From Dicyema japonicum (taxonomy: Eukaryota; Animalia; Dicyemida), in contig RDEW01000018.1 in the NCBI GenBank assembly GCA_011109175.1, positions 312,887-376,886 on the forward strand: a stretch of DNA of 64,000 nucleotides, written 5' to 3'. Positions within the stretch are counted from its first letter, which is position 1. Each line of letters opens with the position of its first letter. Both the position numbers and the translations under genes were made by a program. Positions 5,108 to 62,760 of this stretch are shown here, in pieces. Under the pieces are notes generated by a model that was not told the DNA's origin, did no database searches, and worked only from the letters and a program-made list of their open reading frames with translations.

Positions 5108-7070
5108 CAGTAAACTCTCTCAAATTTGCCGTTTTTGGTTACAGCAAAATTGTGGCAAATTTGAGAATTGGCAGATTTCAGAATAGAATTTTATTTGAAG
5201 TTTTAATTGATTTATTTAAAAATAATTAAAATATTTAAATTAATAAATTTTATTTTTAAAGGAAAACAATATTTTTAACCAAAGAAACAAAAATTAATTA
5301 AAATTTATTAAAGTAATACTCAATTCCCAATTCCCTCTTATTAGAATTTTTAATATTTTCTTTATATCTTCTTGTTGAAGTAATGAATTCTACATCATTG
5401 TCATTTTCAATGTTTTCTAGAAGATAATTTTCAATCTATCTTAATTGAAGAGCATTTCAGCCTTGTTTAATGACTCATGTACTTCTACACAACCGGATTC
5501 TTCTTGGTCCTCAATAGCAATTAATTTCTTCTCTTCATCAATCCTTCTGGTTTAGTGGTTAGGTGTCGGGCTTAAGTGGCTTAGGCTACGGGTTCGAATC
5601 TCGCTGCTGTTCACCTGGTGGAAGGTTCCACGCATCTACGATGCAGAAATGGTTTGACGAGTGACGCCGTCATCAGTGAATGCTCACTGCGGAACTGGAT
5701 TGTCTAGAAAGGGCACTCACACAAGAAAAAGAAAAAAAGAAGTGAAGATCATTCCTTGGTTCTACGATTAGTTAAAATTAACTGTTCTTTACTTAAATAA
5801 AGTGTGTGTCCTGCCTTGCGGAGTTATAAAATACTATGGCTCTCGTGAAAAGGCTTTATTATTATCAATCCTTCTTTTCTCTGTAATCAATTGAAATTAA
5901 TTCTTCTATTTCAATAGGATAATAAATATCTGTTCTGGATGCAATTTCATCTGTTACATTTATGTTAGTAAATTCTGAATCGCATTCTGTACGTTCTAAT
6001 ATTATTATCAATCCTCCTTTTCTCTGTAATCAATTGAAAAAAATTCTTCTATTTCAATAAAGTCATAAATATCTGTTTTGGATACAATTTCATCTGTTAC
6101 ATTTATGTTAGTAAATTCTGATTCGCATTCTGTACGTTCTAAACGCTTAAAACAGTTTGAAATTGTTTGAGATTTCACATCTTTCCATGCCATTTTTACA
6201 AACAATACAGTATCCCTAAGATTTAACTTCTTATGTGATTCCAAGTTATAAATATTTTCAGTCGAGTAACTCCTTGAAACTTCTTCAAATTCTTTTTAAA
6301 AGACATCAATATCCACATGTTTTTCAGTGCGCATTTCGCCGTGTAATTTGTAATTCGAAATCTGTCTTTTTCCAGAAACCCGAAAGAATTTTTAAAATTA
6401 GTTAACGAAAATTCTTCCTTATGTAATAATAGAGAATCGTTCAATAAAGCACCTTAAACGTTAGAGTAAATTGTGTACCTTTTGATTCCATTGAATCCAT
6501 CCAATCTACTAGTTGTAATTCGAAATCTGTCTTTTTCCAGAAACCCGAAAGAATTTTTAAAATTAGTTAACGAAAATTCTTCCTTATGTAATAATAGAGA
6601 ATCGTTCAATAAAGCACCTTAAACGTTAGAGTAAATTGTGTACCTTTTGATTCCATTGAATCCATCCAATCTACTAGATTTTTATCAAACTGTTAGTTTA
6701 AGATTTCAGTCTTGAACTGAAATAAAAGCGATTCTGCATTCATTAATATTCAAGATTCTCTTTTTAAAAATAGAAGAAAAAATGTTGCATATCGCCTGAG
6801 ATGAAGCTGATATATTGGTTTCTTTATACCACAATATTTCCACTTTTTGAGCAATTGAAAGTATGGTGTAGCCTCCAACAAGAACATTCCGACCCATGCT
6901 TGCTTTAAAGTATTTCAATTTTTAAAAAATTTTAAAAATATTAAAAAAAAATAAAAATAATATTTTAAAATGTTGGCAAATTTCAGAATTGGCAAATATC
7001 ATTGCAAAAATATAAAAAAATCGATAAAAAATGGCAAATTTAAGAGTGGCATATTTGAGAGAGTTTACTG
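5108..7070 (-). mobile_element. Tigger/pogo DNA transposon, both ends intact, internally deleted
   Basis: 18-bp TIR CAGTAAACTCTCTCAAAT at 5108, inverted at 7053-7070, with TA on both flanks. Minus-strand remnants of the N-terminal HTH (LSIAQKVEIL), the CENP-B-like HTH and the C-terminal AWKDVKSQTISNCF; no DDE core seen. Confidence 0.9.
5549..5740 (+). mobile_element. tRNA-derived SINE inserted in the Tigger element
   Basis: A-box-like TAGTGGTTAGG, B-box GGTTCGAATC (5591-5600), unrelated body and A-rich tail. No complete cloverleaf. Confidence 0.6.
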
Positions 7071-9070: not shown

Positions 9071-9204
9071 GTTTATTCTATTTATTAATTTTATTGATTA
9101 ATTATTAAAATTTATAGATATATTTTAATATCCAATGAAAAATTTATGAAATTTCATATTTTTAATTCAATTTGCGAACGACAATGAATTTATCCTAAGA
9201 TTAA

Positions 9205-9600
9205 TTAATAGGAAGAAAGTATTGACTAACTGATTAAGTGATCCTAGCCTCCAACATCTCTCGAATTATCTTCGAATGCATTTATCCTAAGATTAATTAA
9301 TAGGAAGAAAGTATTGACTAACTGATTAAGTGATCCTAGCCTCCAACATCTCTCGAATTATCTTCGAATGCTCCGCCAGCGATCCAGCTGGATTCCTGAA
9401 TTGTCTTCTTTTATGTGAATTCTATCTTAGTGCACTTTTTTATGCCGATCTGAATTCCACCACATGTGTCACCCTTTCTCTGAATGGGTTTCCTAGCTTC
9501 TTGCAGATAAGTAGGAAGCCCTGACCATCTTTCATTGAGTTAAAGGAACAAGCCATTGATAAAACCACGTGACATAGCCTCACAAATCTCATAGGTTTTG
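9205..9600 (-). mobile_element. 3' fragment of the 2A-bearing Ingi/Vingi-like family
   Basis: Reverse complement aligns by eye to 42700-42950, including tgttggaggct(a/g)ggatcac(t/c)taa. Confidence 0.7.
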
Positions 9601-11248
9601 TCAACCAATAATATCAAGTTTCAATTTAAATTATTTTGAGGAATTGAATCGTTAAATTTAATTTAAGATTGAATCACGATGCTGGTGACTATTAGAACAG
9701 ATTTCCTTCGCAATCCTGAGAGCAATATCCACCCAGTTAGGCTGCGGCCCTCTAACTTTAATTTTTTGCTTCATTTTGACTAATAAACGTAACCAGTGGA
9801 ATAAGATAATGTGACCTAATGAACATCAAAGTCGTCAGTGAATATTAATGCAAAATAGAAGATGACTAATATTGACTTTAAAATATTTTGCAAGTCGCAT
9901 TTCTTTAAACATGAGACAAGGTAGTCTGTCACTCGAAATAAATTGTGGATATAGCATGGGGCGCCACGTGTATGAAAACTTTCACTTCAAACAACCTCAC
10001 TTAGAGTGCTGGCAGTGCCTGTCAAGTCCCTGAAAAGGCAGGGACATTAAAGCGGCTGACTGGTGATGCAACGATGTAACTATGGAAACCTCTTTAGCCT
10101 CAGATTCTTGTACTACGATCTCTTCAAAACACTCGGAAACTTAATTTTAACCCGCTCAGGGGCATATTGTCCATTCGAATGGATTTTTTCCCAGTCAAGA
10201 AGGGAATAGCAACGCAGTTAGGAAGTTGATTTCTAACTCTATTTTTTGTTTTATAATAAACTAGCAACATAAATTTCGCCCACATATATTTTATGTCATT
10301 GACATGATGTGTGGCTACAACAAATGTCATATTTGACGTTATTTGTGAAACAAGTTGATTGATGTTTTTATTTTACTGACGTTGAATTTATGACTACTTG
10401 CCTGAGTAACAGAACTCAAGACTTCGTCTTAGAGAAAACTCTTGATAAGGTAGGTTCTACGCATTCAGAATACTCATAGTAAAAATCCATCAAGTCAATC
10501 ACTTTCCTACGCATCATTTGACCATTAGTGACACTCAATCGCGAGAAGATCAGTTACAATTTATTCCCCTAGGACCACTAGATTCAAAGAACGTCAGCAG
10601 GTAACTAAGCGATTAAAGACTTACAAAATAGAGATCGAAACCAGCGAGGAAGACATCTTGAATCAATCTCCACCATAGATTTGGAGTCTTCTCGGATGGT
10701 CCTTGAAGTCTTCAATAAAAGTGTCGTAGAGAGCAGCTTAGTAAGTTTGCACTAACAACAAATTGCCCAAATTTAATGTTATTTCAGGCAAATTATTAAT
10801 ATTTACAACCACAAATGAAAAATATTCAAACAGAAAGAGCTTTGTGGTTTTTACGATTTTATCAGGAAAAAATTAAACTCAGGTAAAACCATAAACATCG
10901 AAATCACTATTTTAAACTTAGTAAATAATTCAATACTCAAAAATCCTAATAAAATTATCTTGCCTACGTGCTTCCAATTTACCATTCAAAGTACAACAGT
11001 TGAGTGGAGGAATAATAATCAAGTGCCTACAGATAAAGGTTATTAACATAAAAAATTCACATGACCTTGCCTAGGTGCTTCCAATTTACCATTCAAAGTA
11101 CAACAGTTGAGTGGAGGAATAATAATCAAGTGCCTACAGATAAAGGTTATTAACATAAAAAATTCACATGACAGAATTAGCACAAACCACATCAAAGATA
11201 AAGGTAACCGATAAATTTAACAAAATTAAGAGCATAATTTCAAAAGAA

Positions 11249-27990: not shown

Positions 27991-28711
27991 TGTATGATGC
28001 GATTCACCTGTCCAAGAAGACGCCTAGTGTCTGATTGGCATACAAAAAGAATCTCTCTCTTCCATACTCACTGGATGAGTTACCAAATACAACTGCTTAC
28101 ATGCTGACTCAAGAAGTACGAATGGTTCAACTGACAGAAGCAATGAAAATCAAATAAGATTAGCTAAGTAAATGCTTAAGATGATTTACATGGACATTGG
28201 CTTTCAAAGATGCTGTCAAAATCATCACCGGTTCCGAGAGTTTTTTGTCATGCCGTGATAATTTTTTTGACAATAGTTCTTTTTTCACCTATCATCATAA
28301 CCGCTCCAAAGGTTTCGAAAGGGATCAGGGTAAAACTGTTTTAATTATTCTTGCATTATTCTGAATATATTAATTTTTGAAATAAAAATTATTTGTGTCG
28401 AAATGATCATCAATTACAAATTGAATTAGACAGCATTCTACGACGTGAGAGATAAGCGACAAGTCCCTGATCTTCGTCATGGAATATATTAATTTTTGAA
28501 ATAAAAATTATTTGTGTCGAAATGATCATCAATTACAAATTGAATTAGACAGCATTCTACGACGTGAGAGATAAGCTACAAGTCCCTGATCTTCGTCATG
28601 AAACTCGGACATATCGCCTCGCTCATGTATCTCATGTGGTTTAATCAGTAAAATTTGATAATCCCCATTTACATAATAAACGAAAAATTAATAAAAATAC
28701 AGCAGGCACGT

Positions 28712-28949: not shown

Positions 28950-30078
28950 GATTTTCTCAAACACTGTTGGCTATTCGAGTGAATTTCCTTCGCAATTCAA
29001 AAAGGAATAGTCACGCAATTAAGTTCGTGGTTTTCTAAATCTAATTTTTGTTTTTATTTTCTAAAATAAATTAAAAATTCCATATTTTTAACATTAATAA
29101 ACATAAAATAGCATAAACTGATCAATACACTAATTTATTATTAAAATTAGCTTTTTTAATAAAAATTGAAATTAATCTAACTCTGATTATTTTCACGTTT
29201 TCTTTCAGTCTCTGACGACTTTCTCTTTATAGAGCTCTTAATGGCTGCAAGAAGAGGTTCTATCATGTAGCGTCAAGAGGCTTATTTAGTACAACTAATT
29301 TTTCATTATTATCAATGTTTAGGATTAATAATCTAAATTACCAATTCCTCTTACTCTTCAATGCAGACTTGTTAAGATTCCTTCAAATTAGTGATAGACA
29401 AATTCGAACACAGAGAATTCGTTCCGAAACTTAAAGCATGTCTCATGCGTCGATCATTTTGTCTATGAAGACAAAATAAAGGGAAATGATTTTTGTCTAA
29501 GTTCTACCGATTTAAGGTTAATACCAAGACAAAGTTCGAACCCGAGACCTTCATATATCCGATGATCCTTTATTTATGAAGCATCGGTTATCAATTATTC
29601 CTGATTCACTTTTTAGCCTTACAAAATGTTTTTAAATAAATTTAAAAATAGGCAATTAAAAACCAGAATGACTGGGTAGCTAGCTCTAAAGAAAAAACTG
29701 TAAAATTTTAGTACAAAGTGTTTTTAAATAAATTTAAAAATAGGCAATTAAAAACCAAAATGACTGGGTAGCTAGCTCTAAAGAAAAAACTGTAAAATTT
29801 TAGTCTCACTTAGACAAAAAGATAACTTTTTTTTAAATATAAGAAACCAGATCAACAGATTATTTTTTCTATAACATTCTCATTTAGGGAGTAACTCCTA
29901 CTTTCTTTAGAGTGTCTGCTAGTCTTAGTAATCTTTAAATTATTTATTTACTATTGATTGACTGTTAACAGAATTTGCAATAATGACAGTGACTGTGTCA
30001 ATAATCGTGGAATAATATTAAAATAGCTACTAAATTATTCAAAAATAATTAAAAAACTTAAAATTGTCAACCGAAAAA

Positions 30079-30087
30079 TATATATAA
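30079..30087 (+). promoter_or_regulatory. TATA-box-like motif
   Basis: TATATATAA ending about 22 bp upstream of the ATG at 30110. Confidence 0.35.
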
Positions 30088-30109
30088 GCAGCACAAAATG
30101 TAAAAAAAA

Positions 30110-31055
30110 ATGATGAAGATTCACGTAATAATCATGACGCTACAAGCAATCTTACTATTCGGGGGTAAGTGATAAACTTATGCACTAGTTGTCGGTTATT
30201 TAATTTATTTACACTTGAAAACAGATTCATCTTCCCAACAAAATAGGAGTACCTGTAAAACCAAATTATTAAAATTTAGCAACTTTGAGCACAAAGGTTC
30301 CAAATTCAGGAAATTCTGAGACCGCTGAATACCGTAAATATTCTACAAAAATACGTAATTTTAATATTTACTAGCAGAACCATTGTGGACTTATACGACT
30401 ACAACACAACGAATGTATCGACCGGAACATAGATGTAATTTCAATATTCATTAGTAGGGACTACTACGAGGAATCCACAGATTAAAACGCAAAGTTACAA
30501 TCCAAAAACTACAGGAATGTATTGGACAACACAAAGATGTAATTTCAATATTCATTAGTAGGGACTACTACACGGAATCCAATGACGACAGGACAATATT
30601 ACAATCCAAAAACTACAGGATTTTATTGGACAACACAAAGATGTAATTTCAATATTCATTAGTAGGGACTACTACAAGGAATCCAATGACTACANNNNNN
30701 NNNCTACAGGAATGTATTGGACAACACAAAGATGTAATTTCAATATTCATTAGTAGGGACTACTACACGGAATCCAATGACGACAGGACAATATTACAAT
30801 CCAAAAACTACAGGAAATTATTGGACAACACAAAGATGTAATTTCAATATTCATTAGTAGGGACTACTACAAGGAATCCAATGACTACAGAACAATATTA
30901 CAATCCAAAAACTACAGGAAATTATTGGACAACACAAAGATGTAATTTCGATATTATTAGTAGGGACTACTACGACACAATTTTATCCAACACAGCGAAG
31001 AACAACTAGTACAACAGAATATTTAGGTATTTTAGCAATCAAATTCATAGGTTAA
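30110..31055 (+). CDS. Secreted or surface Thr/Tyr/Trp-rich tandem-repeat (mucin-like) protein
   Basis: Hydrophobic N-terminus MMKIHVIIMTLQAILLFGVVGYLIYLHL. Phase-1 introns of 24, 25 and 20 nt, then six 22-23 nt repeat introns, give units such as WTTTRNPMTTGQYYNPKTTGNYWTTQR; ends TTSTTEYLG*. The unspliced frame has stops. N-gap at 30695-30703. Confidence 0.85.
30415..30970 (+). repeat. 104-bp tandem repeat (81-bp exon + 23-nt intron), at least 6 intron copies
   Basis: Intron starts at 30435, 30539, 30643, 30734, 30838 and 30942, i.e. 104-bp spacing on each side of the N-gap. Confidence 0.9.
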
Positions 31056-31639
31056 ATTTCCTCCTGGTTTCGATTAATTCCTTATTTTTGTTTCTGTTGG
31101 TTTTTTTGTTAAATTCCTTACTATGAACATACAAAATAGTGTGACAGGCAGTTAGTGTTATCACGTTGTTAGTGTTATTTTAAAGAAAATCAATAAATTA
31201 AAATTTTCCACTAAAATATAAAATATTAAAATATATCGTTTGATAGTTTTTTTTCTATTTTTTTGTTTTTTCACAAAAAAAGTTTGTCGAAAACCAAACA
31301 CATAGAAAAATTATAGCAGCACTCTATATAAAAATAGGTTTTCCAAATTTATTTAAACAGAAAAACACCGTCATTGTCAGAATGAAAAATTTAGGTGATC
31401 CCGGCCTCCCACANCAAATATACCGTTTGATAGTTTTTTTTCTATTTTTTTGTTTTTTCACAAAAAAAAGTTTGTCGAAAACCAAACACATATAAAAATT
31501 ATAGCAGCACTCTATATAAAATTAGGTTTTCCAAATTTATTGAAACAGAAAAACACCGTCATTGTCAGAATGAAAAATTTAGGTGATCCCGGCCTCCCAC
31601 ATGCTCGGACTTAAAGGAAGTGCCGTCCAAGGAAATTTC

Positions 31640-32200: not shown

Positions 32201-34249
32201 GAATTACTTTTACTTATTGTTTGATTAATTAAAAATCTCGATAAAAAACTTTTTCGTTCCATATATTACTGACCACAAAATAAATTTAAAAGCACTAATA
32301 CTAATATCCTAAAATCAAAAAATTCAAAACTATGGCTTAAACACCAAAAACCATAATGCTAAACGTTAACTCTCATCCGACATATGTAGGGCAACTCGTA
32401 TTTCTGACAGATCGCACTGCAACATCTGTAGAGACATAGGCAATTATTCATAAATTCTGCACTTGAATTAAATGTCTAGAAAATATCGTCTAGAAATTTA
32501 ATATACTTTGATTCCATATTCTTGTATACCTAATATAAAGTGTGGAAAAATAATATTTATTACATGTTATTTATAAGCGAGTTGTCTCTGACCGATTACA
32601 AAGAGTATCGTGGTATTCCTCGATTCAACACTGTTGTGGANACTTGTATTTCTGACAGATCGCACTGCAACATCTGTAGAGACATAGGCAATTATTCATA
32701 AATTCTGCACTTGAATTAAATGTCTAGAAAATATCGTCTAGAAATTTAATATACTTTGATTCCATATTCTTGTATACCTAATATAAAATGTGGAAAAATA
32801 ATATTTATTACATGTTATTTCTAAGCGAGTTGTCTCTGACCGATTACAAAGAGTATCGTGGTATTCCTCGATTCAATACTGTTGTGGAATCATGTTCACG
32901 ATAATCCAGAATTTTTTAATATAGTAGAATTGTAAGTTATAGAAAATCTAGAAAGTTATACAAAAAGTTTTTTATTGTTATTTATTAGTAAGGATTATGA
33001 GTTCCAGTTTAACTTTGAGAGGGTAAATTTGCAGTCTTCGTATTATGAAAAAATGAATAGGAAGATGGGAGTGGTTCTTTCACAAAGACTAAAAAATCAA
33101 AACCATTGAAAATAATAGTTAATTAGTATTTTTGTAAAATTGTTAACTTTGATATGATAGATTATGTTTTTTTGACATTGATGGATTACTCTCAGCGCTT
33201 GCGACATATTATTTTTTCTAGGCGAGTTNGTAAGTTATAGAAAATCTCGAAAGTTATACTAAAAGTTTTTTATTGTTATTTATTAGTAAATGTGAGTTCC
33301 AGTTTAACTTTGAGAGGGTAAATTTGCAGTCTTCGTATTATGAAAGAATGAATAGGAAGATGGGAGTGGTTCTTTCACAACGACTAAAAATCAAAACCAT
33401 TGAAAATAATAGTTAATTAGCATTTTTGTAAATTGTTAACTTTGATATGATAGATTATTTTTATTTTTGACATTGATGGATTACTCTCAGCGCTTGCGAC
33501 ATATTATTTTTTCTAGGCGAGTTGTCGTTTAGCCGACATAGGCATTAATTCATAAATTCTTGCTCTTGATTCAAAAAAACCAATGCTAAATTTTTGTAAA
33601 ATGGCGATATGATAAGTAGCCGTAGATTTTCAGGTGGCTCTGCCCTCTTGTTAGGCGAGTTGTCGTTTAGCCGACATAGGCATTAATTCATAAATTCTTG
33701 CTCTTAATTCAAAAAAACCAATGCTAAATTTTTGTAAAATGGCGATATGATAAGTAGCCGTAGATTTTCAGGTGGCTCTGCCCTCTTGTAGGTTTTTTAA
33801 TAAAACTTAGGACTTTTATCCCGCGGTATGAATAAGTTTTAGGAACATGTCTTTCAGTATATTTGTGAAAAAACTCTCTACTATATTTTAGCAGTTCTAG
33901 GCAGATTCAGGTCCTGGATTACAGTTGTTCTTAATTTGCCTTGCAAGGATCACATTAAAATGATTTTGTTGCTAAGAGGTTTAGTTTTATCAGAAAACGA
34001 TTCAAAGGATCATTCTCGATATGGAATTTAATTTAGAGTGGTGGTCAGCAATGATTTCTATAAGCTGTAGCAGATTTACTATCCACCTTCCGTCCTAGTT
34101 TAGAATTTTCAGATTATTATTTGTCACAGTCCATGGATGCGAGACGCCAGAGCTACGAGGTTTTAGAAATAATAATAATTGTTAATAAAAAATACATTTC
34201 TGAAGTTTTTTTCTTTATCTATTTACTAAATATCTGAAATTATTAATTT

Positions 34250-36266: not shown

Positions 36267-37331
36267 ATGCAACAATATAAGCATGAAATTACTGAAAATC
36301 CGGATTATCTAACCAAACCTCTTCCAGAAGGTTGGGTCATGAAGATCGACCAGTCGAAAGTCCCCTATTACATACACACCGACACATCCGTCTGCACCCT
36401 ATCCAGACCCTTTCTTTTTGATTCCAATCTTGAATGCCTAAGAACAAGTTCTAAGGTTGCTCAGCAGGATCTCTCTTGCTCCAGCCATGTGAGAAAAAAG
36501 AGTGAACTCCCGTTCGTTTATATATCTGATAATTGCATAAACTTGGCAGTCCCTCTCGGGTAGTCCTATTGAGTCACATTCTAGGGACGGAACCTCAACG
36601 TTCCGGAGAATCACAACGGAAAATAAGTCCCCAGTCAGTGTGATCAATGAACTAGTCCAGAAAGGGTTGGGGTGCCATCCAAAGTACCAAAATCTCTTTT
36701 ACATAGGTTTGAGATCACTGGAAATACTATTGAGGGATACTTTGCTCAGATCACTGTCGGGGATCTGGACGTGAACGGACTCGGCAGAACGAAAAAGATT
36801 GCCAGAAACTCGGCAGCTACGGAATTTCTCAAAAAATTTTGTCCCGACTTGGATATACACGTTTTTGATCCTCAGGAGACTGTAAAAATTGAAATATATT
36901 GTTAGTGGACCATCGAAGATGTGGCGGATGCCCCTAAATCCATAAGACAACAGGATCCTTACGACATACTTGTGCAATTGGTCTCGGCGACGTACCCGGT
37001 ATATGTGAAGACGTGCATGATGTTCGCTGAGGGGAAAACTACGATGAAACTCGGAGACCTCTCCGTGGTAGTGGAATGTTGGGATGAAGAGACTGGGAAG
37101 CAGAGGGCGGCAGAAGATATGCTTTACAGGATATTCCCCGACTGTGAGGACTGGGGATCGGTTGTTGAGAGGGTCAACCAGGAAATACCTCCAATAGGAA
37201 ACAGGAGGGAAATAAATACTCTTGCTTCCAAACAATATTCGTTCCAAGAGAAGAATCCGGTGATTAATCTTTTTTATGAGGACCTGCTGCAACACGCGAT
37301 TTCGAGTTGTCAAAAAGTCGGTAAAATTTGA
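36267..37331 (+). CDS. DGCR8: Pasha/DGCR8 Microprocessor subunit, about 320-330 aa
   Basis: WW motif PLPEGWVM..SKVPYYIH..VCTLSRPF; dsRBD1 KSPVSVINEL...GRTKKIARNSAA; dsRBD2 PYDILVQL...KQRAAEDML; C-terminal IFPDCEDWGSVV. Introns at 36684-36706 and 36882-36905, plus one ending at 36549. Confidence 0.92.
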
Positions 37332-40214: not shown

Positions 40215-42985
40215 CGTGGCATAATGCGGTTCACCTGTTGTTGTGGTGGCGCTCAGTGCAAGTTTTGCATGGAATAGAACCGTTCGACTTTCCCTACCTT
40301 TTTGCGATTTTCAGAAGGGTGGCCTACCAACTCCCTCGTTTTCTTTTTACTACTTCTGTCTGGTGATGTAGAACCTAATCCGGGACCCAACTGCACTCTG
40401 ACTATTCTACAATTAAATGTATATGGAATCCGCAATAAAGTGTTGGAACTACGATCCCTATTATCCCATTTGAGAGTTGACATAGCTTTCATCCAAGAAT
40501 CGAAGCTCTCTATAAAGTTCCCAACATCTTGTTTTCCTGGATATTGTGTACTTTGCATTGACCGAACAAGAAGTCTCGGAGGAGGATTATCGACTATCGT
40601 TAATCACTTTTTCTGTATTTTCTCTCTGCGAAGGAGATCTTATTCTGGAACAGATTTCTATTGAAGTTTTCGTTTCTTCGACGAGATGTTTTACATTGTG
40701 TAATGTCTATATCCCGCCTCAGGGGTCATGTACTACTTCCTACACCCACAACCTATTGAGACTGTGTGGATTAAAGGATCTGCTATTATGCGGAGACCTA
40801 AATGCCAAACATCCACTTTGGCTCCGGAAACAATCAGCCGACAGTCGCGGCGAGTACATCCTATCCATACTTAATAATTTGACTATTTTCAATGACCCGG
40901 ACGCTCACACAAGGACCCCATCCCGAAGAAGCGACAGTCCAACATCCCGGACCTGTCCCTCTGCTCTCCTTCTATAGCTGGATGTATTTCATGGAATGTT
41001 CGTTATGGTTTCTCAAGCGACCATAACCCCATTGTGTTGAGACTTAGAAGGCTTATTTGTTCACCGTGTTGTTCTACAAAGTTCAAAATTCTGAAAGCTG
41101 ACGAACTATTTATACCTGTCGCCTCTTACAAGAAGTTCAATCCAAGATTATCATCTTAAATTGTGTCACTCATCAAGAAACGAGAATCGTTGACGAGGAA
41201 AAGAACACAGACCAATAACTCCTTCTACTACATACGTTCACTGAATACCAAATTATTTGAGCTTATCCGAACTAATAACATACTCAAATGGAGCTGCTTA
41301 TTTGAACGACTATATCACAAAAACTTTTGTGCCACATTTTGGAAAACGCTAAGAAAGATCAATAGCCTTTTCAATGAGGAGGACCGCAGAACTGAGGTCG
41401 TTACCCGCACGCAAACTTTCAAACAAGATTATGAAGTACTACGTATCGATCAGCTACAAAAATTTTTCTCGTTTACGCTTGTTGAACGGCGCTGGCCACA
41501 ACAAGAAGCATATTCCACCTTCTTCACCCCCGATGATGTTGACAAGGCTATTAAATTGCTGCGTCCTACTCGTGCTTGTGGTCCCGACGGTATTTGCACT
41601 ATTCACCTCAAACACCTTGGATCTCACGCACGGGCCATACTATCAAGACTGTACAACGGCCTTATCAACTATCATACGCTACCTAATGGATGGAAAAACT
41701 CCCTGATTACGTCAATTCCCTCTTCTTACCGCCCCATCTCAATAACTTGTGCTTTATCAAAAGTACTGGAAAAGCTTGTGTTAATACGCATCTCTCCTGT
41801 TCTACATCTATTAGAGTTTCAACATGGTTTCAGAGCAGACCGTTCTACAACGACTCACTTGGGTTCTATCTCCCAGCTTATTACCGACGGCTTCAGCATG
41901 AGAACACATTCATGGACGGCCTTAGTATCCATTGATATACAGAAGGCCTTTGATTCTGTCCCGAGGAAACTCCAAATGCAAAAGATTTTTAATTCCAATT
42001 TACATCCGAACATCAAGCTATGGCTGGAAAATTTCTTAACTGGGAAGGGTCCGGATTGACAAAACCTTTTCAAAATAAAGACTACTCCCCAATGGGGTCC
42101 CGCAAGGCTCCCTTCTGTCTCCTCTTTTATTTAACTTATTTCTACACGATTTACCTACTACCAATGATCAGGACACTATGTTTTTATCTTATGCATACGA
42201 CTTGATTATCGCTGAAAGGGACAAATCTTCCTCCAGGGCTGTGGTTCAGTCAAATCTAAACCGAATATGTGACTGGCTATCTGCAAACATATTATGTGTG
42301 TGTCAGCATCTAAATCCCAGTTCACCATTTTTACTACTGATAGAAGATTAAAGGATGGACTCGAACTGTTTTTTGGAGATACTTTATATCCCTTCTACGC
42401 GGACCCAGAAGATCCTTGTGGTAGTTTTCGACTCTCTGATGACGTTCTCGAGTCACGTGGAGAAGGTCCTTGTTAAGGGTCTTCGGAAATGGAACATTTA
42501 AAAGCGATCATAAAGAAGAGCCCTTTTCCCCTGCTGCTTGCGTCAACAAGGTCTACCAACAAGTCATCGTTCCTACCATAGAATATGCATGTTCCGCCAG
42601 AAGATTTGCGATTCCCTCTTCGAGTGTGGATTATTTGAACTCCCTCAGACGGATACTTATGCACCACATGGACATCCCCATTGGCGGCCTCGTTTCTGAT
42701 GAGGCGACGTTGAAGAATGGCCAGGGTTTCCTACGTTTCTGCAAGGAACTGGGTAACCCACTCAAGGAAAAGGTGGCCCATGCAAAGAAATTTCGGCCGG
42801 TTATAAAAAAAAGTGCACGCCGATTGAATTCCTTTGCAGAACAAAGAGAAGGCGTTTCCGGAATGCGGTTGGGTCATCAGAAGACCACATGAAGAGAGTT
42901 CGTATGTTGTTGGAGGCTGGGATCACCTAATTAGTTAGTTTTGACTCATCTTTCTTGGTGTTCTTGGAGTTAAATAAATAAAAAG
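40215..42985 (+). mobile_element. Full-length (~2.8 kb) Ingi/Vingi-like LINE: structured head, 2A, APE, RT, no RNase H, frameshifted
   Basis: APE motifs LQLNVYG, IQESKL, NVYIPP, GDLNAKH and SDH; RT motifs YRPISIT, QHGFR, IDIQKAFD and YAYD-like; conserved 3' tail then AAAT repeats. No ORF1 is present. Confidence 0.9.
40362..40388 (+). other. 2A (StopGo) ribosome-skipping motif GDVEPNPGP
   Basis: Exact D(V/I)ExNPGP consensus after a hydrophobic stretch (FFLLLLSG), in frame with the APE domain. Confidence 0.9.
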
Positions 42986-51799: not shown

Positions 51800-53640
51800 T
51801 TATTTAAAAAAACAGAAAAAAACGTCAAAGAGTTAGGTGATCTCAGTTCCCATAATCAACTGCAACATCTAACGTCTGCGGTCTTTCATTCCAGGAAAGA
51901 GCCTTTTCTCATTTCTGCAGAGGAGTCTGACTAAGGTTGTAAATTTTTTAACCAATCGGTTTTTTTTGCATTGAAAATAGACAGACGAAGCGTGCTTCCA
52001 TCTTTCTCATAGACGCGAAGGAATCCGTATCCGCGACTACAGGTCGTGGCTTCCGTGTGCAAGGGATTGATGTTGATCCAATATGATTGGCCAACATACA
52101 AATAGTTGTTCAGTAGACAGACGAAGCGTGTTTCCATCTTTCTCATAGACGCGAAGGAATCCGTATCCGCGACTACTGGTCGTGGCTTCCGTGTGCAAGG
52201 GATTGATGTTGATCCAATATGATTGGCCAACATACAAATAGTTGTTCAGTATATTGAATTGAGTCTGTAAAGCAGTGGTTCCCAACTTTTCGGATTCTTA
52301 TTTTTCGCTATAGAAACAGAACCTTTAAATTGCCCAGTCATTTCTGGAGCATCATCAGTGCAGATACTCACACATGCATTCCAATCCAACTTTATATTTT
52401 CAAAATTTGAATTTATAAAATTGAAAATGTCATATCCCTTTGTTGTTCCGAGCAACTCTTTGCAGCAAAGAAAATCTTCGACAATGGATTCATCGTTCAT
52501 ATATCCAACGAAAACAAGGAGTTGCATTTTTTCTGTAATATCTCAGTTTTCATCCACCTAAAGCACAAAAACACAGATTTTTTTATTCGCCGAACCAAAG
52601 TGGTTTCAATGTCATCAGACATATCCTTGATGCGTCTGCTCACAGAATTATTAGAAATAGGATTTAATTCGAGCTCAGCGGCAGCAATTTCTCAGAACAT
52701 TATCTTCTCTATTTTTTCGCATACAGACAAAATAACAGTTTCGGTGAGAGTATGCGATTTCATATTTTTAGCGGCAATCTAAGCAACAGCATAACTAGCA
52801 TGCGGTGCTTTATCGTTTATTTTGAATTTTTTTGTAAAACTGGATGCTTGAACTTTATTCTGGTCCAATTGCAGCATAAATATTCTTTTTTTTCTTTGAA
52901 AGTTCAGAGTATTTGGTAGAGAAATGACGTCTAAGTTTCGNCAGACAAAATAACAGTTTCGGTGAGAGTATGCGATTTCATATTTTTAGCGGCAATCTAA
53001 GCAACAGCATAACTAGCATGCGGTGCATTATCGTTTATTTTAAATTTTTTGTAAAACTGGATGCTTGAACTTTATTCTGGTCCAATTGCAGCATAAATAT
53101 TCTTTTTTTTCTTTGAAAGTTCAGAGTATTTGGTAGAGAAATGACGTCTAAGTTTCGTTGGAGCCAAAGCAATATTCGCAAGTTTTTCACTGCAAACAAC
53201 ACAGTGTCCCCAGTCCATGTAAAACCAAAGACAATATAACTTTTTCGATACGATCGAACTTTAAGATGTGCACTGTCACATGACTCCATTTAGACAGCAT
53301 AAATTAAATTAATACGTTTTGAAAAATTATGCTTTTGTAAAAAAGAATAAAATTTTTTTTGAACTTCGGAGAACCCCTAGAATATTTCGCGGGACCCAGG
53401 TTGGGAAACACTTTTATAGAGTATAGTCTCTGATAATGTGAATTTCGCAACAGAGGCATATTCTACAGCTGGCGCCGGTAGAGTGTTGTAACAGAAACAT
53501 CCAAGGTGTCCTCAAAACAAGTGCACGTACAACGTTCAGTTTCTGGTGGCCTTTAGTGATGACTTGCTTTGCATGGATGTTGGAATTCAATAGCATCGAT
53601 TTTTGACGGGTAAATTACTTGGTGACGACGCCTCTATTGC
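51800..53640 (-). mobile_element. Ingi/Vingi-like LINE 3' portion split by a hAT insertion
   Basis: KLNVVRAL (53414-53596) continues as LQTQFN (below 52272) down to the gatcacctaact tail. Confidence 0.6.
52273..53413 (-). mobile_element. hAT Buster-type transposon, internally deleted, both ends present
   Basis: Ends CAGTGGTTCCCAAC and GTTGGGAAACACT; RSYRKSYIVFGF and EDFLCCKEL..TTKG..ICTDDAPEMTG motifs; 8-bp flanks are both nnnTAnnn but only 5/8 identical. Confidence 0.88.
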
Positions 53641-53699: not shown

Positions 53700-54082
53700 T
53701 AGAGGACTTAAGCAACCTTGCAAGAAACAACAACTGGTATGCGATATAACTTAATATGACTTCTCTGTCTGCTGTCTACAAGGGACAAAAACGACCGTAT
53801 AATTTACAAAACTGTTTAGAAAATTCCACCTTTTTATTCTCTTATCGGCTTGTCGATATTATGGTCTCGGATTTGCAGTCCACCTGATTTACCGTGTTAC
53901 AAGAGTGTAGACAGCATCTAATATTAAAATGGAAATGGAGGACGACCTGGACTACCTAAGAGAAGTAGCGCGCAACAGAGGATCATGGTCGAGGCTGACA
54001 GAGAGAATGATTAGGAATACGGCACAAGGGAAACTTAACTAATTTTATGTTTTCTCGGGAGTGCTTTTTAATAATAATAATA
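53700..54082 (+). mobile_element. RTE-like LINE 3' end
   Basis: DDLDYLREVARNRGSWSRL followed by (TAA)n. Confidence 0.65.
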
Positions 54083-56029
54083 AATTACAAATCTGAGTTA
54101 GTGGATGACCCCAAGTGTTTTAGTTGTTGAATTGAATGAAATAACATTTGTTACTCTGAATAATAATAATAAATTACAAATCTGAGTTAGTGGATGACCC
54201 CAAGTGTTTTAGTTGTTGAATTGAATGAAATAACATTTGTTACTCTGAATAATCAGTTCTTCATTTTCTTGATAATTGGCATTAATGAATTCCAGTCTAA
54301 AAGTATTTTCCGAAAATTGACTTTTTCTATACGGCATGTGCAATGGTCTATGTTGGAATAGGCTTTATGATAATAATCTCTCGGAGCCTCTTAGATTGTA
54401 GAGATAAAGACCTGGGAGATTTATTTCTGAGTGTTAGAAAACATCTATTTCCATATAGTCGTAGTTTTTCACGGTTTTTCCAGAACGGTTTTCTTTTTTA
54501 TTTACTCTTAGTACATTCAAATGAAGGAAACTGGTGGCTAACATGAAAGTAACAACATGAACTAAGCACTCCCAGAAGTATAACTGATGTGGTGCAGAAA
54601 TCGAAGGCGGATCAAGAGAAGAGGTGCTTATCTTGTAATTGGTGAAAAAGCAGAAGTGCAAAGCGATGAAACCGATCGTCCAATTATGTTCATATTGTCT
54701 TGTAAAGCTGTATGGTGACCGCAATGAAGTGGCCACGAACTTTCTAAGATAGGGAAGCTTTGGTATCAATAATGTTCGACACAGACATCCCAGAAACTTG
54801 TTGATATTAAGGTTTTCGCCGCTATTAAATATGATTTTCTTTTTTATTAATAGAAAGACAAAACAAAAAATCGTAGATCAAGCATCATGAAGTAGGTGTG
54901 AGAATTTTCGATTCACAGTGTAAGTGGTCAATTGGAGTGGCTTTAGACAGTCTATAAATATTCCTATTTTCAGGTTCGTTTTTAATAAATAGAAACACCG
55001 GGCAGGAACAGCATAGTTTATCCTAGTTCTGATGAAACTCTTCTAAGTGTTGTTTGTTTTATCTACAATGTTCAGAATAGAAACACCGGGCAGGAACAGC
55101 ATAGTTTATCCTAGTTCTGATGAAACTCCTCTAAGTGTTGTTTGTTTTATCTACAATGTTCAGAATGATTTCTTATTTTCCTTTTATGTTTCTGTGTTAA
55201 ATGGATACAACGAGCGTTAAGGTCGACACATCGGAATGATTTTTTGAGCTCTAAGTATTATCTTATTGAGATTTTGGCCACTGGGGGATACTTTATCCGG
55301 AAGCAGTGAGAGTGATGTTCAACAAATGATGTGAAGGCAAGTCAGTGTGCTCGTTACAAGTTGAGACTAGTCTTTGGTGCATGAATTAACTTTTGTTTTG
55401 TGAATTTTCAGGATGATCAGGTTATGGTGAGTACTTAAATATTATATAAAATCCAAAGAGATGAGTTGAGTGTCCTTACGTGCTCATTGTATTCATGTAA
55501 AATATCCAGTGAGGTATGGGAATCACCACATCTTGACAGTGTCCTTTTACTTTGTAATGCGAATAAGATCAAGCAGATAAGACCCGGGACATGACGGTGG
55601 ATAAAATGTAAATATTTACAATTGTCATTCGAAGAGACGGAAAATTGATTTTTGGGGTTTGTTGTTCAAAAGGATCGTCGAAGGGGAAGAAGGCTGATAT
55701 TTTATCCGAGATGTCGTCGACAAGGACTTTATTTTCGACCTTTCAGGCAAAACCTCTGCTTCTTCCATATTTTTTGTCTCGCCAAAAAACAGAGTATTCC
55801 AAAAAGTGGAAGTTGGATACCGAGTGTTGACTTTTGTCTCTCGGAAAAAGATATACCCACAGAATGGTCTAAAAGATTCATTTATGGTTCAGTAATTTTC
55901 CTAGGATTCATTTATGGGTATTTTAGTTGTGGTATGCTCAGATCCTGGGTTTTGATTAACGTCATTAGATGATATGAGACCATCCACATCTCCATGTTTG
56001 CAGGATAGGGAAATTGAAACTTTTTTTCA

Positions 56030-56500: not shown

Positions 56501-56594
56501 TCGAGAAAATGCTTATAATAAAAAAATATGATTTAATAAAACACGACAAGAAAATTAAATAATAAATTATTTAAAGTTCAGCTACAAACGTGCA

Positions 56595-59500
56595 ATGTGT
56601 GAGGAAATCAAGCAAAGGGTATTCAACAACGAATTTCTCATTTCACATTGCAGTCAATGTACTTATCGAGGCATTGAGCTCCATAATGGCATGAAAATCC
56701 TCCTTATCAACGACCCCAACGTTAAAATCGCGGCCACCAGCCTTTCCGTGGGCATTGGTAACCTTATCATTAATCACAGGCTCATTCTACGAACCAAATG
56801 ATATACCAGGACTTGCCCACTTTTGCGAGCACATGCTTTTTATGGGTTCTCAGAAAGTCTGATAATTTTAACATCCTAGTTTCCTGATGAAAACGAATAC
56901 GGCAAAGTTTTCTCGTCTAATAACCTTCTAGTTCATTCAGAACAACGGGGGAACCACCAACGCTTTCACAACCAAAGACCAGACATCATTCTACTTCACG
57001 GTCAAGACAGGGAAGTTGTTCCAAGCCATGGAGATGTATTTTTAATGGTTAAGTTAAGATTTGCTGAGTTTTTCATATCGCCTGTCTTTTGCCCCGACAG
57101 CATTGTGAGCGAGGTTGAGGCCGTCGAGTCTGAGTTTGTGGGGAGCAGCGAGGACGACTCCTTCCGAATTGGGGAGGTTGTCCGCATGTTTGTGGAGGAC
57201 GGCCATCCTATAAGTTTATTCTCCTTTGGTATGACTTAACGGTTAAATTAGGCAACCTAAAATCGCTACTTGAGAATCCACGTGATTGTGGGACAGACAT
57301 CCGGGAGGCCCTAAGGAGATTTTTTAGTTTTTTTAGCAGCAATTTGATGACTCTCACAATAATTTCTAACCGTAACCTTGATTACTTATAAAAGATGATA
57401 TCGGCGAGATGGAACAGAAAACATCGGCAATTTTCTCGAAGATTGAGAATAAAGATACACACAGGAAGACATGGGAGATACCGATGTTGAAAACGAAGGA
57501 TGTTGTGGTGAATTTGTATTGTAGCACATGATTTTCATTGAGAGTCTTGGGGAGGTTAACAAGCTCTGTATCCAGTTTTTTGTCCCTGACATGAATGACT
57601 ATGATAAATCTATAGTTTGTTGTGTCACTTACTTAAAGTCTCTGAGGTTCATTGAATACTTGTTGAATAATCCATCACCACAAGGACTAATATATTTACT
57701 ACAAAAGCGCGGTATAATTTAAGTATTTAATTTTTAAACTATATTTGAAATTATTAATTTTCTGAATCTTATTTTCACAAATATTTGTATTTAATTAATT
57801 AGGACTGATTGTGGATGCCGATTTTGAATGTGTTCATGAGGCTAAAGGATTCAACGTGTTTGTTGGTGAATTTGAATTGGAGGCCTACAACATTGGTATT
57901 GTCTCTAGTCATCGTAGATTACATCAACCAAATTGTCCTAATGTTCTTTGCTTATATTAAATTGGTGAGTGATAACCCTTTCCCAAAGTCAGTCTATGAC
58001 GAATTCACTGTTTTTTTCTCCTTCATTGCAGACCTTCTTAGCCATTCAGTTCCACTATGGAGTTACTCCTCCTCCAGCTTCACTGGCAGAGTTAATCTCA
58101 GCATCTCTGCAGGTTTTACCCATTAAGGACATATTCTTTTTGCCTGAGAAATACGACCTCGCCTCGGTGGACCACGTGATCAAGTATTTTACTCTTGAGA
58201 ATGCACTGTAGTGATTCTAGTGAGTTTAGACTGATATTCGTGGCTAAAAAGCTGCCTTATAAGACAGATCGGACTGAACCACACACAGGTGCAAAATTCT
58301 GCATAAAAGCCCTTAGTGAGGCACAGATTGAGGTACACTTTAATTTTATCACCCAGATGTGGACTTCCTATGTTTATAATGAAGTATTCGGATACCCTGA
58401 AGCGAACCCCTACTTGCCGAAAAATATTGATGATATTTCAAGTCTTATTGATTTAGATGATTTGAAAAGTCAAAATGAGGTTATTGGTGTCCAAAATTCT
58501 AGAAAGCGAATTCACCTAATCCTTCTAAATTGATGGTTTTTTGTGCCTTAACTTGTTAAGGCTTTCCCACAATATTGTCTTTGGTATAAATTCGACTACT
58601 ATTTAATGTTCCCTAAAGTCTTTTTAGGCTTTCGTCTATTAAAGTATTGATTTGTTTCATGATAGTGAAAATTTCTCAAAGGATCCTCTCAGTTACTGCC
58701 TGTCTCACGTTCTGATGCATGCCTTTACTGACCACTTAGAAAATATTCTGGCTTTGGCAGACATGGCGGGCATCTCTGTCGAGGTGAAGATCCTAAATAA
58801 ATCAATTAAAGTTTGCCTTGATTTGATTTTGATTATTTTCTATGGATTTTCTTCCAAAATCAGCGAAATTGTTCAAATCGTGGCCCACAACATCAAACAT
58901 TTCATCCCAACCAAAATTAGGTTCGCCGCCGTAAAATATGACGTTTGTGTTGGCTTACTCAAGTACTTCCAAGAAATCGAAGATATGAAGATTGCGAGTC
59001 CTTTCGAGCAAGCCTGTTTTTTCTCATCCTTGGCTCATACTGAATTTGGCTTTCTTCCAGAAGATTTACTTGCTGTCAAAAAAAGTAAGTAGTAGTTAGA
59101 TGACTAGATGTTACTATGGAGTCTCTGATAAAATTCAGGGATGATAACCTGAGGGAGGTATTCGTGGAGGGATTCATCAGTGGTCCCGTTTCCACGGAAG
59201 TATGAACTGTGTTGATGTGTCTAGGTGGCTTCTCAACTGTTTTTTCGATTTCAGGAACATTTTCCTGTAGAAAATCTGCCACCATGTGCTAAATTATTGA
59301 AATTTTTTATTCCCAAAGGTTAGTCTGAAATTTTACTTAAGGATTGTCACGTCTGTTTTTCTCTGATACAGACGAACATACTGGCTATGGAATCTCACAT
59401 ACTTTCTTCGTTCCAGAGACTGCCACTTTAAACTTGGGGCCCCGTCAGGAGTTCTTTTGCAGTCGGCTGCGAATTGAGTGCATTCTGGGCATGTTGGAAC

Positions 59501-60135
59501 TGATTTTGTCTGACGAGTGCTTTAATTTCCTGCGGACAAAACGACATTTGGGTTAATTGGCGGTAAAACATAGGTTATTCGGTCTCTTTTGAAGTCTGTG
59601 TGTCACGTGGCTGCCACGCTGTTAAAATTTTTGTTGAGTCTTCCTACAATGCTAAATATGTCGAAGGTCAAATCGAAGAAGCTCTGCATCACTTTAGAGT
59701 TTGCTAATAATGGAATTATAGGCCTATTTGGCAAGCTTTTCCAGTGATGAGTTCGCCAACGTGGTGGACTCTTACAGGTCAATTTGCCTAGAGAAGCCCT
59801 CGACTGCTTATAAACAAGCGAATAGACTGTTTAAGGCTATTTTGACGGATACCTTTGAGTTTGATAGAAGTTAGGAGGTTGCTGTTTATTTAGGGAACAA
59901 ATTGGTGGCGGAGGTGGACCTTTTGGAGCTGAGGCACATGATCTGTTTTTTTGACACATTCGTTGGTTCTGGGGAAAATGTCCCTGAGAGATCTCGAATC
60001 ATATGTCACGTGGTGCCTATGATTGGGATGAAGGAATATATTAAAGAGTCCGAAACGGTTGTATGGCTGATGATGTTGTAGGCAGCTCAGCCCGTAGAGC
60101 TGTTGTATGAACTGAGGAAGCAGTGCTTGAAGTAA
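56595..60135 (+). CDS. IDE: Insulin-degrading-enzyme-like M16A metallopeptidase, many micro-introns
   Basis: [35 protein letters not shown] (HxxEH at 56818-56832), [16 protein letters not shown] and [12 protein letters not shown]; ends ...LRKQCLK*. Nardilysin is not excluded. Confidence 0.9.
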
Positions 60136-60447
60136 TTACTTTTTCTACTAAATTTGTTTTTTTTACTTTTTGTCTATAATTGTTTCTATTAGTAATGATA
60201 TAAAAGTGTCCTGAGATGCTAAGCAAGGAAAGAGTTTCAGTTTTTACGTTCGAATTTTGTATATTTTCGATTGGATGTTAGCGTCACTAAAATTTGGGTA
60301 TTCTAAGTGGATTAGTTCCCTTTGAAGGCCTATTATTATGCCATAGATCACCAGGTAAACGCTAACGTTCGAATTTTGTATATTTTCGATTGGATGTTAG
60401 CGTCACTAAAATTTGGGTATTCTAAGTGGATTAGTTCCCTTTGAAGG

Positions 60448-62760
60448 CCTATTATTATGCCATAGATCACCAGGTAAACGCTAATTAAAAGGAAAACGCC
60501 ATCAGATGATCCCGGTTTCTCTCAGAAATATTCTCATCTTTCTTCGGTGTTGCTCTCGGGAATCGACGCATTTTCGATTGTACCGTTCTTATGGTAGTTT
60601 TTCATTTTGGGTGAATTTTCAGCCCAAATTCCTCACAAGAACCTCAAATTGGGTTGCTCTTATTGATAGTCCTGTGATTCGAGAGATTGTTTTGGTCATA
60701 TTGGATTGAGACGAGTTGATCTTATCCATGCTTGTTTTAGCAAGTTTTGTCCCTCAAGCTGTACATCCATAACTTATAGTTGGCTCATTGAATTGGGTGT
60801 ACAACGTGAATGACCGATTTGAAGATCTTTTAAAATTTGAGACGAGCACCATCAAGAAGTTAAGGTTTCGTGCCGAAGCACTGAGTTTGACACATGTGTA
60901 GCCCATGATGGTGTTGAATGTTAAACCCAGAATCTTAGATTTTTTCTTGTGTGGAATTAGTTCACCATTCAAAAATAGCTCGGTGGAATAACTTGATAGT
61001 CTTCTATTCGATGTAAAAAGAAAGGCAAAAAAATTTTCTGTAGATTGAATTTGTGTTCAACCATTCATGAAGTCTAATAGTTTGCAATGTATTTGTAGCT
61101 GGCGTAACAGGTATATCTTTGCAAGCATAAATTATGTCATTAGCATACGCAAGGGTTAGCGAATTTGTGTCCGAATCAATTGGAATATCGTGCAAGAATA
61201 GTTAAAAAGCGACGGTGACAAGGGGAACCCTGAGGCACGCCGTTTGGAAGAAATTTTGAGACCGATCGTTATGATTTTGTTACGACTTTTCCTCTTTTAC
61301 CAATGAAAAAGTTCCCGAGCCATCTTTTGAAAATGCTGGGATTTCTGAGCAGTAGATCTTCTTTGTTAAGAATTTTCTGGGGACCGAGTCAAAAGCCTTG
61401 CGGATGTCAACCGAGCACAATTAAGTTTTGAGGTGCCTAGGCTTTAACTAAAGTCCCGCCATAATAAAGCTTGTGAGGGTTTGCAAGTGTGAACTTGTAG
61501 ATATGTCTTTTTTAAATCTGTGCCGGAAGGATTGCTTACGTAAATATAGGAAGATGCGGTCCAAGACCATTTTCTCAAGAATTTTTCAGAATGTGCATAA
61601 TAGGAATATTGGTCGATAAGAAGAAGAGGACTCTTTTTGTTTTCCAGGTTTCTGAACTGGGTAGATGTGGGCCAACTTCCAGATTATTGGAATTGTGTTT
61701 TTATTTATTCTGGTCCGCTTGAGAGGTTAGCCTTTCTACCTCCAATGGTGAAACCGATATATGATCATGACGATATCTTGGTTTTATCAATGAACAAGGG
61801 AGGACCCTCGTACATTTTATGAGATAAATAACTATTCTGAGCGTAGAACTTTGTCATTCTATCGAATTCTTTTTCGCTGAAATCAAGACTGTTTCTCTTC
61901 TTAGGGATTTTGATCTTTGAGATATTCTTCCACATGATTGATAGGAACCTCTGCTTGTTAAACGTGGAGGTGATTTTTCTCCATGCGTCCATTTCCTTTT
62001 TCTTATAGGTTTTCTTTATTTCGCTATCAAACACTTGAATTCTGTATCTAACTACTGGTGATGGCCTTTGGATGCTTTTGAGTCGATTAAGTTCATTCAT
62101 AAAAGTTTTATAGAATTTGATTGACCTTTCTCGAATAAATACCTTTATTGCCTTCTGGATCTTTCTGTTAGCATAGGAAACTGAATTATCTAGTGAGTTA
62201 AAACGTACTGAATCGAAATCTGCTAAGTTTATGTCCACATGTTAAGAAATCTTTCTAATTGACGTTTCTGTAATCCAGGAAAGTGTTTCGTCTTCTTTCA
62301 GAGATGAGCGTGTTTTTCATCCGAGTGGAAATAGGATTGTGGTCTGTCCTAAATCACAACCAGTTGTCAAGAAAAGCAATGTTAGGGATAGCAAGGTGAA
62401 GTGTTGTCATAAGCTCTATAAGGTTTTCTTGTGTTAATCCGATAGTCGCTAAGAATTATGAAATTATCCAGTAGAAAAAAAAGGAGATCTCCTCTGGCAT
62501 CAGCAGGTGGTTTTGTACAAGATCAGATGTTTCGCGTTGAGCTGCCGCATATCAACAAATATTGGTATTGATGTACCACATCCAAGGAGAAGGTAAACTA
62601 TTTTGGGAAGGAGCTGGTAGGGGAATGTATATGTTCACAATTGTAATATTTCCCATGTTTGTTCTAATGGAGACTCCAATGTATTCCACGAGAAATGGAG
62701 GATCATAATGCGTAAACATTATTATGTGCTCGATCTCACTTTTGACAAAAGTAATGACTA
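60448..62760 (-). mobile_element. 5'-truncated Ingi/Vingi-like LINE (partial APE + RT + tail), decayed
   Basis: ITIVNIYIP, DIRKAFDSV, VPQGSPLSPSLF, YANDII and KILGLTF; tail ccgggatcatct...cctggtgatctatggc-(ATA)n. Confidence 0.85.

Follow-up and report, generated by a model that had tools for sequence, protein, structure and literature searches.

A probable split gene with ultra-short introns in a tandem exon-intron array of Dicyema japonicum

Introduction

Does a tandem repeat with stop codons in every reading frame conceal a gene whose introns were multiplied together with its exons? This question is raised by a 104-bp array in a stretch of Dicyema japonicum DNA of 64 kb, the whole of which was analysed and is referred to here as the window. 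The genome of D. japonicum has a G+C content of 36.7%, is made up of repeats to 49%, with many LINEs, and has a mean intron length of 38 bp (PMC6736024). Among 51 animals, median intron lengths below 30 bp occur only in myxobolid myxozoans and in D. japonicum, and the splice signals of these genomes are reduced to GTa and AG (PMC13644364). An earlier note on the DNA of the window had read the array as a hidden mucin-like gene in which each repeat carries its own micro-intron. Here we describe a computational analysis of this locus.

Results

The window is AT-rich (36.4% G+C). Tandem Repeats Finder placed 5.4 copies of a 104-bp unit at 30427-30973, and reported 27 bp as a sub-period of the unit as well as higher-order periods at ~195 and 299 bp. 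The start-to-start spacings of the repeats are 104, 104, 91, 104 and 104, the 91-nt spacing being due to an assembly gap of 9 N (30695-30703). An exact 23-nt segment recurs five times (starts at 30435, 30539, 30643, 30734 and 30838), and a sixth copy at 30942 is shortened to 22 nt by one deletion and also carries one substitution. A search of Rfam with the whole window gave no match. As the earlier note had stated, the length of the 104-bp unit is not a multiple of 3 and the unit contains stops; without splicing, every unit of the array has stops in all three forward frames. No plain ORF at the locus exceeds 51 aa, confirming that a track of open reading frames is blind to the gene proposed here.

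Removal of nine GT-AG segments turned 30110-31055 (+) into a 10-exon gene reading from ATG to TAA. The removed segments are, in order, 60, 25, 23, 23, 23, 23, 23, 23 and 22 nt long, and all of them are of phase 1, in agreement with the earlier proposal. GT..AG ends are present in nine of nine segments and a GTAA start in eight. The eight segments of 22-25 nt fall within the genome mode of ~20-27 nt and have GTAA at the 5' end and TAG or CAG at the 3' end. Removal of the introns restores one frame whereas their retention gives stops, with the exception of the assembly gap.

The unique 5' part of the model begins downstream of a TATA-like motif at 30081-30088 (+), a possible core promoter 22 nt upstream of the ATG. 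Exon 1 (30110-30164) supplies the ATG and a hydrophobic N-terminus. It is followed by intron 1 (30165-30224, 60 nt, phase 1), which contains in-frame stops; a shorter alternative of 24 nt (30165-30188) likewise preserves the frame and would lengthen the product by 12 residues, most of them hydrophobic. Exon 2 (30225-30254, 30 nt), intron 2 (30255-30279, 25 nt, GT-AG, phase 1, containing SNPs 30261 and 30262) and exon 3 (30280-30354, 75 nt) complete this part.

The cassettes follow. Intron 3 (30355-30377, 23 nt, phase 1) is a degenerate first cassette intron, sharing 19 of its 23 positions with the repeated intron. Exon 4 (30378-30434, 57 nt) is likewise a degenerate cassette exon, with homology to the unit at its 3' end. 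Intron 4 (30435-30457, 23 nt) is identical to introns 5-8 (30539-30561, 30643-30665, 30734-30756 and 30838-30860, each 23 nt). These introns separate exon 5 (30458-30538, 81 nt), a diverged 27-residue unit, from exon 6 (30562-30642, 81 nt), a further 27-residue unit, and from exons 7, 8 and 9. As assembled, exon 7 (30666-30733) has 68 nt and a broken frame, with the 9-N gap inside it. Exon 8 (30757-30837, 81 nt) is 2 nt different from exon 6 and may represent one unit assembled twice; exon 9 is found at 30861-30941 (81 nt). Thus, excision of the 23-nt segment does leave 81-nt exons encoding 27-residue units, as the earlier note had claimed, except for the 68-nt gap exon. The claim that the frame survives a shorter last intron was also upheld: intron 9 (30942-30963, 22 nt) carries one deletion and one substitution, and the frame is unaffected because the deletion falls within the intron. 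The last unit, again degenerate, is carried by exon 10 (30964-31055), which ends with a short hydrophobic C-terminus and the stop codon TAA (31053-31055). An AATAAA at 31192-31197 (+), 137 nt past the stop, is a possible polyadenylation signal.

The order of the predicted product is accordingly a hydrophobic leader, a short Ser/Thr-rich unique part, the exon 4 unit, the units of exons 5-9 and a degenerate last unit. Tandem arrays usually fade into diverged units at their edges. The resemblance of intron 3 to the repeated intron and the cassette-like end of exon 4 indicate that this array does so at both edges.

Support for introns of this size within the window came from an M16 peptidase gene of the insulin-degrading-enzyme (IDE) type at ~56560-60080 (+) (Pfam PF16187). 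We joined its exons, including a 27-nt micro-exon at 56880-56906, by removing GT-AG segments at 56857-56879 (23 nt), 56907-56931 (25 nt) and 57036-57058 (23 nt), and the joined peptide aligned without gaps to residues 64-148 of human IDE (E=5e-22). A fourth 23-nt intron of this gene (57229-57251) lies outside the three validated by the alignment. By this alignment, introns of 23-25 nt are real in the window. The segments at the array resemble the published ultra-short introns of D. japonicum in being GT-AG, 22-25 nt long and equipped with a GTAA donor, the published lengths being ~20-27 nt (PMC13644364, PMC6736024). When GTAA..YAG segments were counted by length across the window, a weak excess was seen at 22-23 nt, weak because the window contains few genes. 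Note that a small gene at 36267-37331 (+) gave a WW-domain match of 24.6 bits, below the Pfam cut-off of 26.9, and has candidate introns at 36560-36584 (25 nt), 36684-36706 (23 nt) and 36882-36905 (24 nt); a Pfam search with its unspliced pieces gave no hit for the double-stranded-RNA-binding parts. An ORF with a reverse-transcriptase domain at 41163-42059 (+) (PF00078, E=2e-13) fits the LINE-rich surroundings.

We next consider the gap in exon 7, which affects the number of cassettes. The gap exon joins in frame only if the gap measures 22+104n nt, or if its flanks are an un-merged overlap. The sequence to the right of the 9 N restarts 186 nt before the gap and is identical to the left copy at 184 of 186 positions, the only mismatches being at 30621-30622. 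Merging of the two flanks produces an uninterrupted ORF of 183 codons with three full cassettes. The same arrangement is common in the window: at 12 of its 15 N gaps (17233, 21476, 22125, 26768, 30695-30703, 31414, 32641, 33229, 37605, 38413, 50223 and 52941) the right side restarts 124-321 nt before the gap, with an overlap identity of ~97-99% where no indel shifts the register. The D. japonicum assembly was produced from a pooled sample with 1.24% heterozygosity, using Platanus, SSPACE and GapCloser (PMC6736024). The 2.0-copy tandem duplications with N at the copy junction are almost certainly un-merged contig-end overlaps rather than biology, which explains why in many of them the N falls exactly at the junction. 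Eleven further 2.0-copy duplications are free of a junction N (5857-6142, 6348-6677, 9183-9371, 10959-11172, 28363-28600, 29620-29804, 33514-33789, 51978-52251, 54070-54253, 54988-55166 and 60246-60484; periods 88-165 bp, 93-100% identical). These may have arisen as the same artefact, with the gap since closed, or may be genuine duplications of recent date.

These observations bear on the first alternative to the assembled structure, namely that the gene is real while its array was inflated during assembly. Haplotype differences would have blocked merging, so that the 9 N joins contig ends overlapping by 186 nt, and the gene would have three full cassettes in a 183-codon ORF. This is quite conceivable, if somewhat short of probable. 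The near-identical restart, the clean ORF obtained upon merging, the presence of the same duplicated arrangement around N at 11 of the 14 other gaps and an SSPACE/GapCloser pipeline applied to a pooled, heterozygous sample all favor it. However, the gap has 9 N and the clear overlap artefacts all have 1 N, suggesting a positive gap estimate near 22 nt; duplicated flanks arise automatically at any gap within a tandem array; and contig depth over the array is several-fold higher than over the flanks, though inconsistently between sequencing runs. The number of full cassettes is thus uncertain, ranging from three to at least five. This alternative challenges the assembled structure and leaves the gene standing, and the finding of a gene is independent of which cassette count holds. 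At 30504 and 30063, contigs from two sequencing runs (X1 and X3) depart into sequence absent from the window; this could mean that a contig is chimeric, or that a second locus has a short stretch in common with this one.

The predicted protein has 229 residues, gap residues excluded, or 183 residues with the merge. It lacks Cys, has one N-glycosylation sequon and has a pI of ~10.4. The repeat region consists of 34% Thr, 9% Tyr, 9% Arg, 7.5% Trp and 7.5% Pro (Tyr plus Trp 17%), consistent with the T-, Y-, W- and R-rich repeat described in the earlier note. It has the tandem repeats dominated by Thr, Ser and Pro that characterize mucin-like proteins, and is unusual in being rich in Tyr, Trp and Arg as well. 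The 27-residue unit is composed of three 9-residue sub-repeats. At the N-terminus, Lys at residue 3 is followed by ~15 hydrophobic residues and then by a polar Ser-rich stretch, with 11-residue Kyte-Doolittle means reaching 2.6; by its hydropathy, the N-terminus would fit a signal peptide. The hydrophobic stretch at the C-terminus comprises only ~10 residues.

We searched a protein database of 5.8 billion sequences with the spliced N-terminal 99 aa, a two-unit junction peptide of 54 aa and a 112-aa query, and found no relatives of 30-196 aa. When the 39-aa plain ORF of a single unit was compared with the Atlas, no meaningful match was obtained (best score 0.74). The earlier note had suggested a search for paralogues, and neither tblastn nor blastn detected any within the 64-kb window.

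A second alternative concerns the destination of the product, which might be membrane-bound rather than freely secreted, through a signal anchor or through a C-terminus resembling a GPI signal or tail anchor. Two splicing variants would lead there. Use of the 24-nt intron 1 lengthens the N-terminal hydrophobic stretch to ~26 residues, which would suit a signal anchor. At the other end, a phase-1 donor at the stop (31051) spliced to an acceptor ending at 31151 would add 10 hydrophobic residues. Both variants keep the frame, 24 nt is closer to the local intron mode than 60 nt, and SNP 31175 (TTA to CTA) would be synonymous if the C-terminal frame were extended. However, hydrophobic residues are often encoded by T-rich 3' sequence by chance, an intron of 101 nt with a GTT donor is atypical here, and SNP 30203, which changes Ile to Val in the 24-nt model, is uninformative. 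We regard membrane attachment as unlikely, and the C-terminal extension via a donor at the stop codon as speculative. Note that the stop codon overlaps the possible donor (GGTTAAA, cut after the first G) and that the extended frame would end at the TAA at 31181-31183.

Is the open frame more than a product of the free choice of splice sites? The earlier note had taken it as a sign of a gene that the frame opens once a GT..AG segment is removed, and this argument did not hold by itself. When 104-nt units were shuffled, 81% permitted such a removal on at least one strand, or 44% if the donor was required to be GTA. The real spliced unit has two open frames, as well as a solution on the minus strand. 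The Thr-rich frame alone stays open through every unit, the other being closed by a stop in the diverged exon 5. The minus-strand solution, a 38-nt intron with a 66-nt exon, is exact in two copies only and lacks a start or context, and periodic 34-aa ORFs on the minus strand are merely the repeat itself.

More specific evidence was obtained from polymorphism. Among public runs, searches found only four, all from one sample (X1-X4), that cover the locus; they consist of genomic DNA, with even depth over flanks and introns and without exon joints, and their contigs diverge by ~2% from the assembly. Six substitutions between reads and assembly fall in the unique exons. Five of the six are synonymous in the spliced frame (30145 in exon 1, 30232 in exon 2, 30296 and 30344 in exon 3 and 30995 in exon 10), and one, 31036 in exon 10, changes Ala to Val (binomial P=0.003 for these six sites, where a fraction of 0.23 would be expected to be synonymous). 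The two remaining frames make 0 of 6 and 1 of 6 synonymous. Since exons 1 and 2 do not share their genomic frame with exon 3, and intron 1 contains in-frame stops, the synonymous signal depends on the proposed introns. Indels behave similarly. The sole exonic one, present in one allele in the reads, is an in-frame insertion of 9 nt just behind 30280 in exon 3, which adds three residues. In contrast, the eight non-coding indels measure 1, 1, 2, 2, 1, 1, 1 and 4 nt. The cassette copies themselves show three synonymous differences (ACG/ACA, AGG/CGG and ACG/ACT) and no indels among exon copies, the single 1-nt deletion residing in intron 9. The 27-nt sub-period corresponds to nine codons. Judged from these patterns, 30110-31055 (+) is very probably a real split gene, and splicing of its micro-introns is predicted.

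The locus might instead be a recently dead or silent copy, that is, a former coding cassette array that is unexpressed or decaying. In the assembly the gap interrupts the frame, and the neighborhood is rich in LINEs. Apart from the gap, however, no exon has a stop or frameshift, and the polymorphism still looks purifying, making a dead copy improbable. Least probable of all, and by our estimate very improbable, is a non-coding minisatellite in which the spliced ORF arose by chance: shuffled units readily mimic it, homologues of 30-196 aa are absent, the runs over the locus are all genomic DNA and the surroundings are repeat-rich, but this reading has to contend with a synonymous bias that extends over two genomic frames, which the proposed introns connect, the in-frame exonic indel among shorter non-coding ones, an ATG with a hydrophobic leader, one frame open through diverged units and the 27-nt sub-period.

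Returning to the split gene, we considered how its introns were multiplied. The earlier note had proposed tandem duplication of exon and intron together, and this is supported: introns 3-9 are homologous and stand in register with homologous exons. In the AGGT model, a new intron is made from duplicated former exon sequence. Creation of these introns from a duplicated exonic AGGT segment does not fit the array, as the intron copies align with one another and not with the exon. Exons 5 and 6 differ at 14 of 81 positions, in contrast to 0 of 46 nt in the flanking introns (30435-30665; Fisher P=0.002). This higher conservation of introns than of exons might have arisen because nearly all bases of a 23-nt intron are constrained, because of conversion tracts, or because the exon diversified.

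Discussion

We consider it likely that 30110-31055 (+) is a protein-coding gene with ultra-short spliceosomal introns (seven to nine GT-AG introns of phase 1), encoding a hydrophobic N-terminus, as a putative signal sequence, and a Cys-free, very basic repeat region, and that it was extended by duplication of a 104-bp cassette. The whole cassette, an 81-nt exon with a 23-nt intron, would be copied by unequal exchange or slippage, with the number of introns rising together with the number of repeats. Gain or loss of a cassette keeps the frame because each cassette exon is symmetric (phase 1-1). The 23-nt introns would be removed by the ordinary spliceosome of the genome and the product would enter the secretory pathway, where the Thr-rich, presumably disordered chain may become O-glycosylated in the manner of a mucin, to function in an extracellular coat or at the host surface. 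Its content of Tyr, Trp and Arg would suit an adhesive or cross-linked matrix role.

The design of exon-plus-intron tandem repeats is already known, and the locus is probably a real unannotated gene that would not surprise specialists. In fibrillar collagens, with their 54-bp exons, and in the kringles of apolipoprotein(a), duplication of exon plus intron raises both numbers. The introns there are hundreds to thousands of bases long, and these arrays therefore do not have the appearance of minisatellites.

A closer parallel is provided by SmPoMuc of Schistosoma mansoni, with a signal peptide ahead of 9-residue repeats that vary in number, and with a 27-bp repeat exon that is duplicated in tandem with its flanking intron, the intronic part being highly conserved among units (PMC2576457). 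The D. japonicum locus similarly has a 9-residue sub-period, one unit per exon and introns more conserved than exons. Its repeat exon, too, is tandemly duplicated with the flanking intron, which amounts to a shared architecture and not to membership in SmPoMuc. In contrast to the SmPoMuc unit of ~1 kb with introns of ~550 bp (PMC2576457), the unit here is 104 bp and the intron 23 nt. Furthermore, the exon has 81 nt instead of 27 bp, contains three sub-repeats and is rich in Thr, Tyr, Trp and Arg codons, and no multigene family was seen within the 64-kb window.

Schistosome micro-exon genes (MEGs) have very small exons and are reported to be restricted to platyhelminths (PMC4350168). The symmetric-exon logic (phase 1-1) is common to MEGs and the locus. 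However, the exons of 81, 75, 57, 55 and 30 nt are far larger than those of MEGs, only exon 2 (30 nt) being micro-sized, and the gene is therefore not a MEG. The likeness to SmPoMuc and MEGs is architectural, the database having yielded no relatives of 30-196 aa.

Unlike the introns in published accounts of D. japonicum, those of the locus are part of tandem exon-plus-intron cassettes, which are absent from these papers (PMC13644364, PMC6736024). The words tandem, mucin and secreted are absent from PMC6736024, and a literature search for exon-plus-intron arrays in dicyemids found no paper.

More tentatively, and with some doubt, the locus may exemplify 'spliced minisatellites'. Introns of ~23 nt would bring a cassette down to the size of a minisatellite unit, so that slippage and unequal exchange could expand, contract and homogenize the array and thereby generate secreted or surface proteins of rapidly variable length. 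The introns would stay near-invariant because splicing depends on almost all of their bases. If this holds, the identical introns would offer a natural test of donor-acceptor pairing by the spliceosome (23 versus 127 nt).

There are also practical consequences. The locus suggests that a class of such genes may be hidden from standard gene finders and repeat maskers in genomes with tiny introns, and repeat-masked 'satellites' of this assembly are worth re-reading as possible genes. Two-copy 'tandem duplications' at its N gaps, on the other hand, should be treated as assembly artefacts.

In conclusion, if confirmed by RNA, the locus would illustrate cleanly how duplication of cassettes raises the number of introns, and the very small gene set of this highly reduced parasite would gain an orphan secreted repeat protein.
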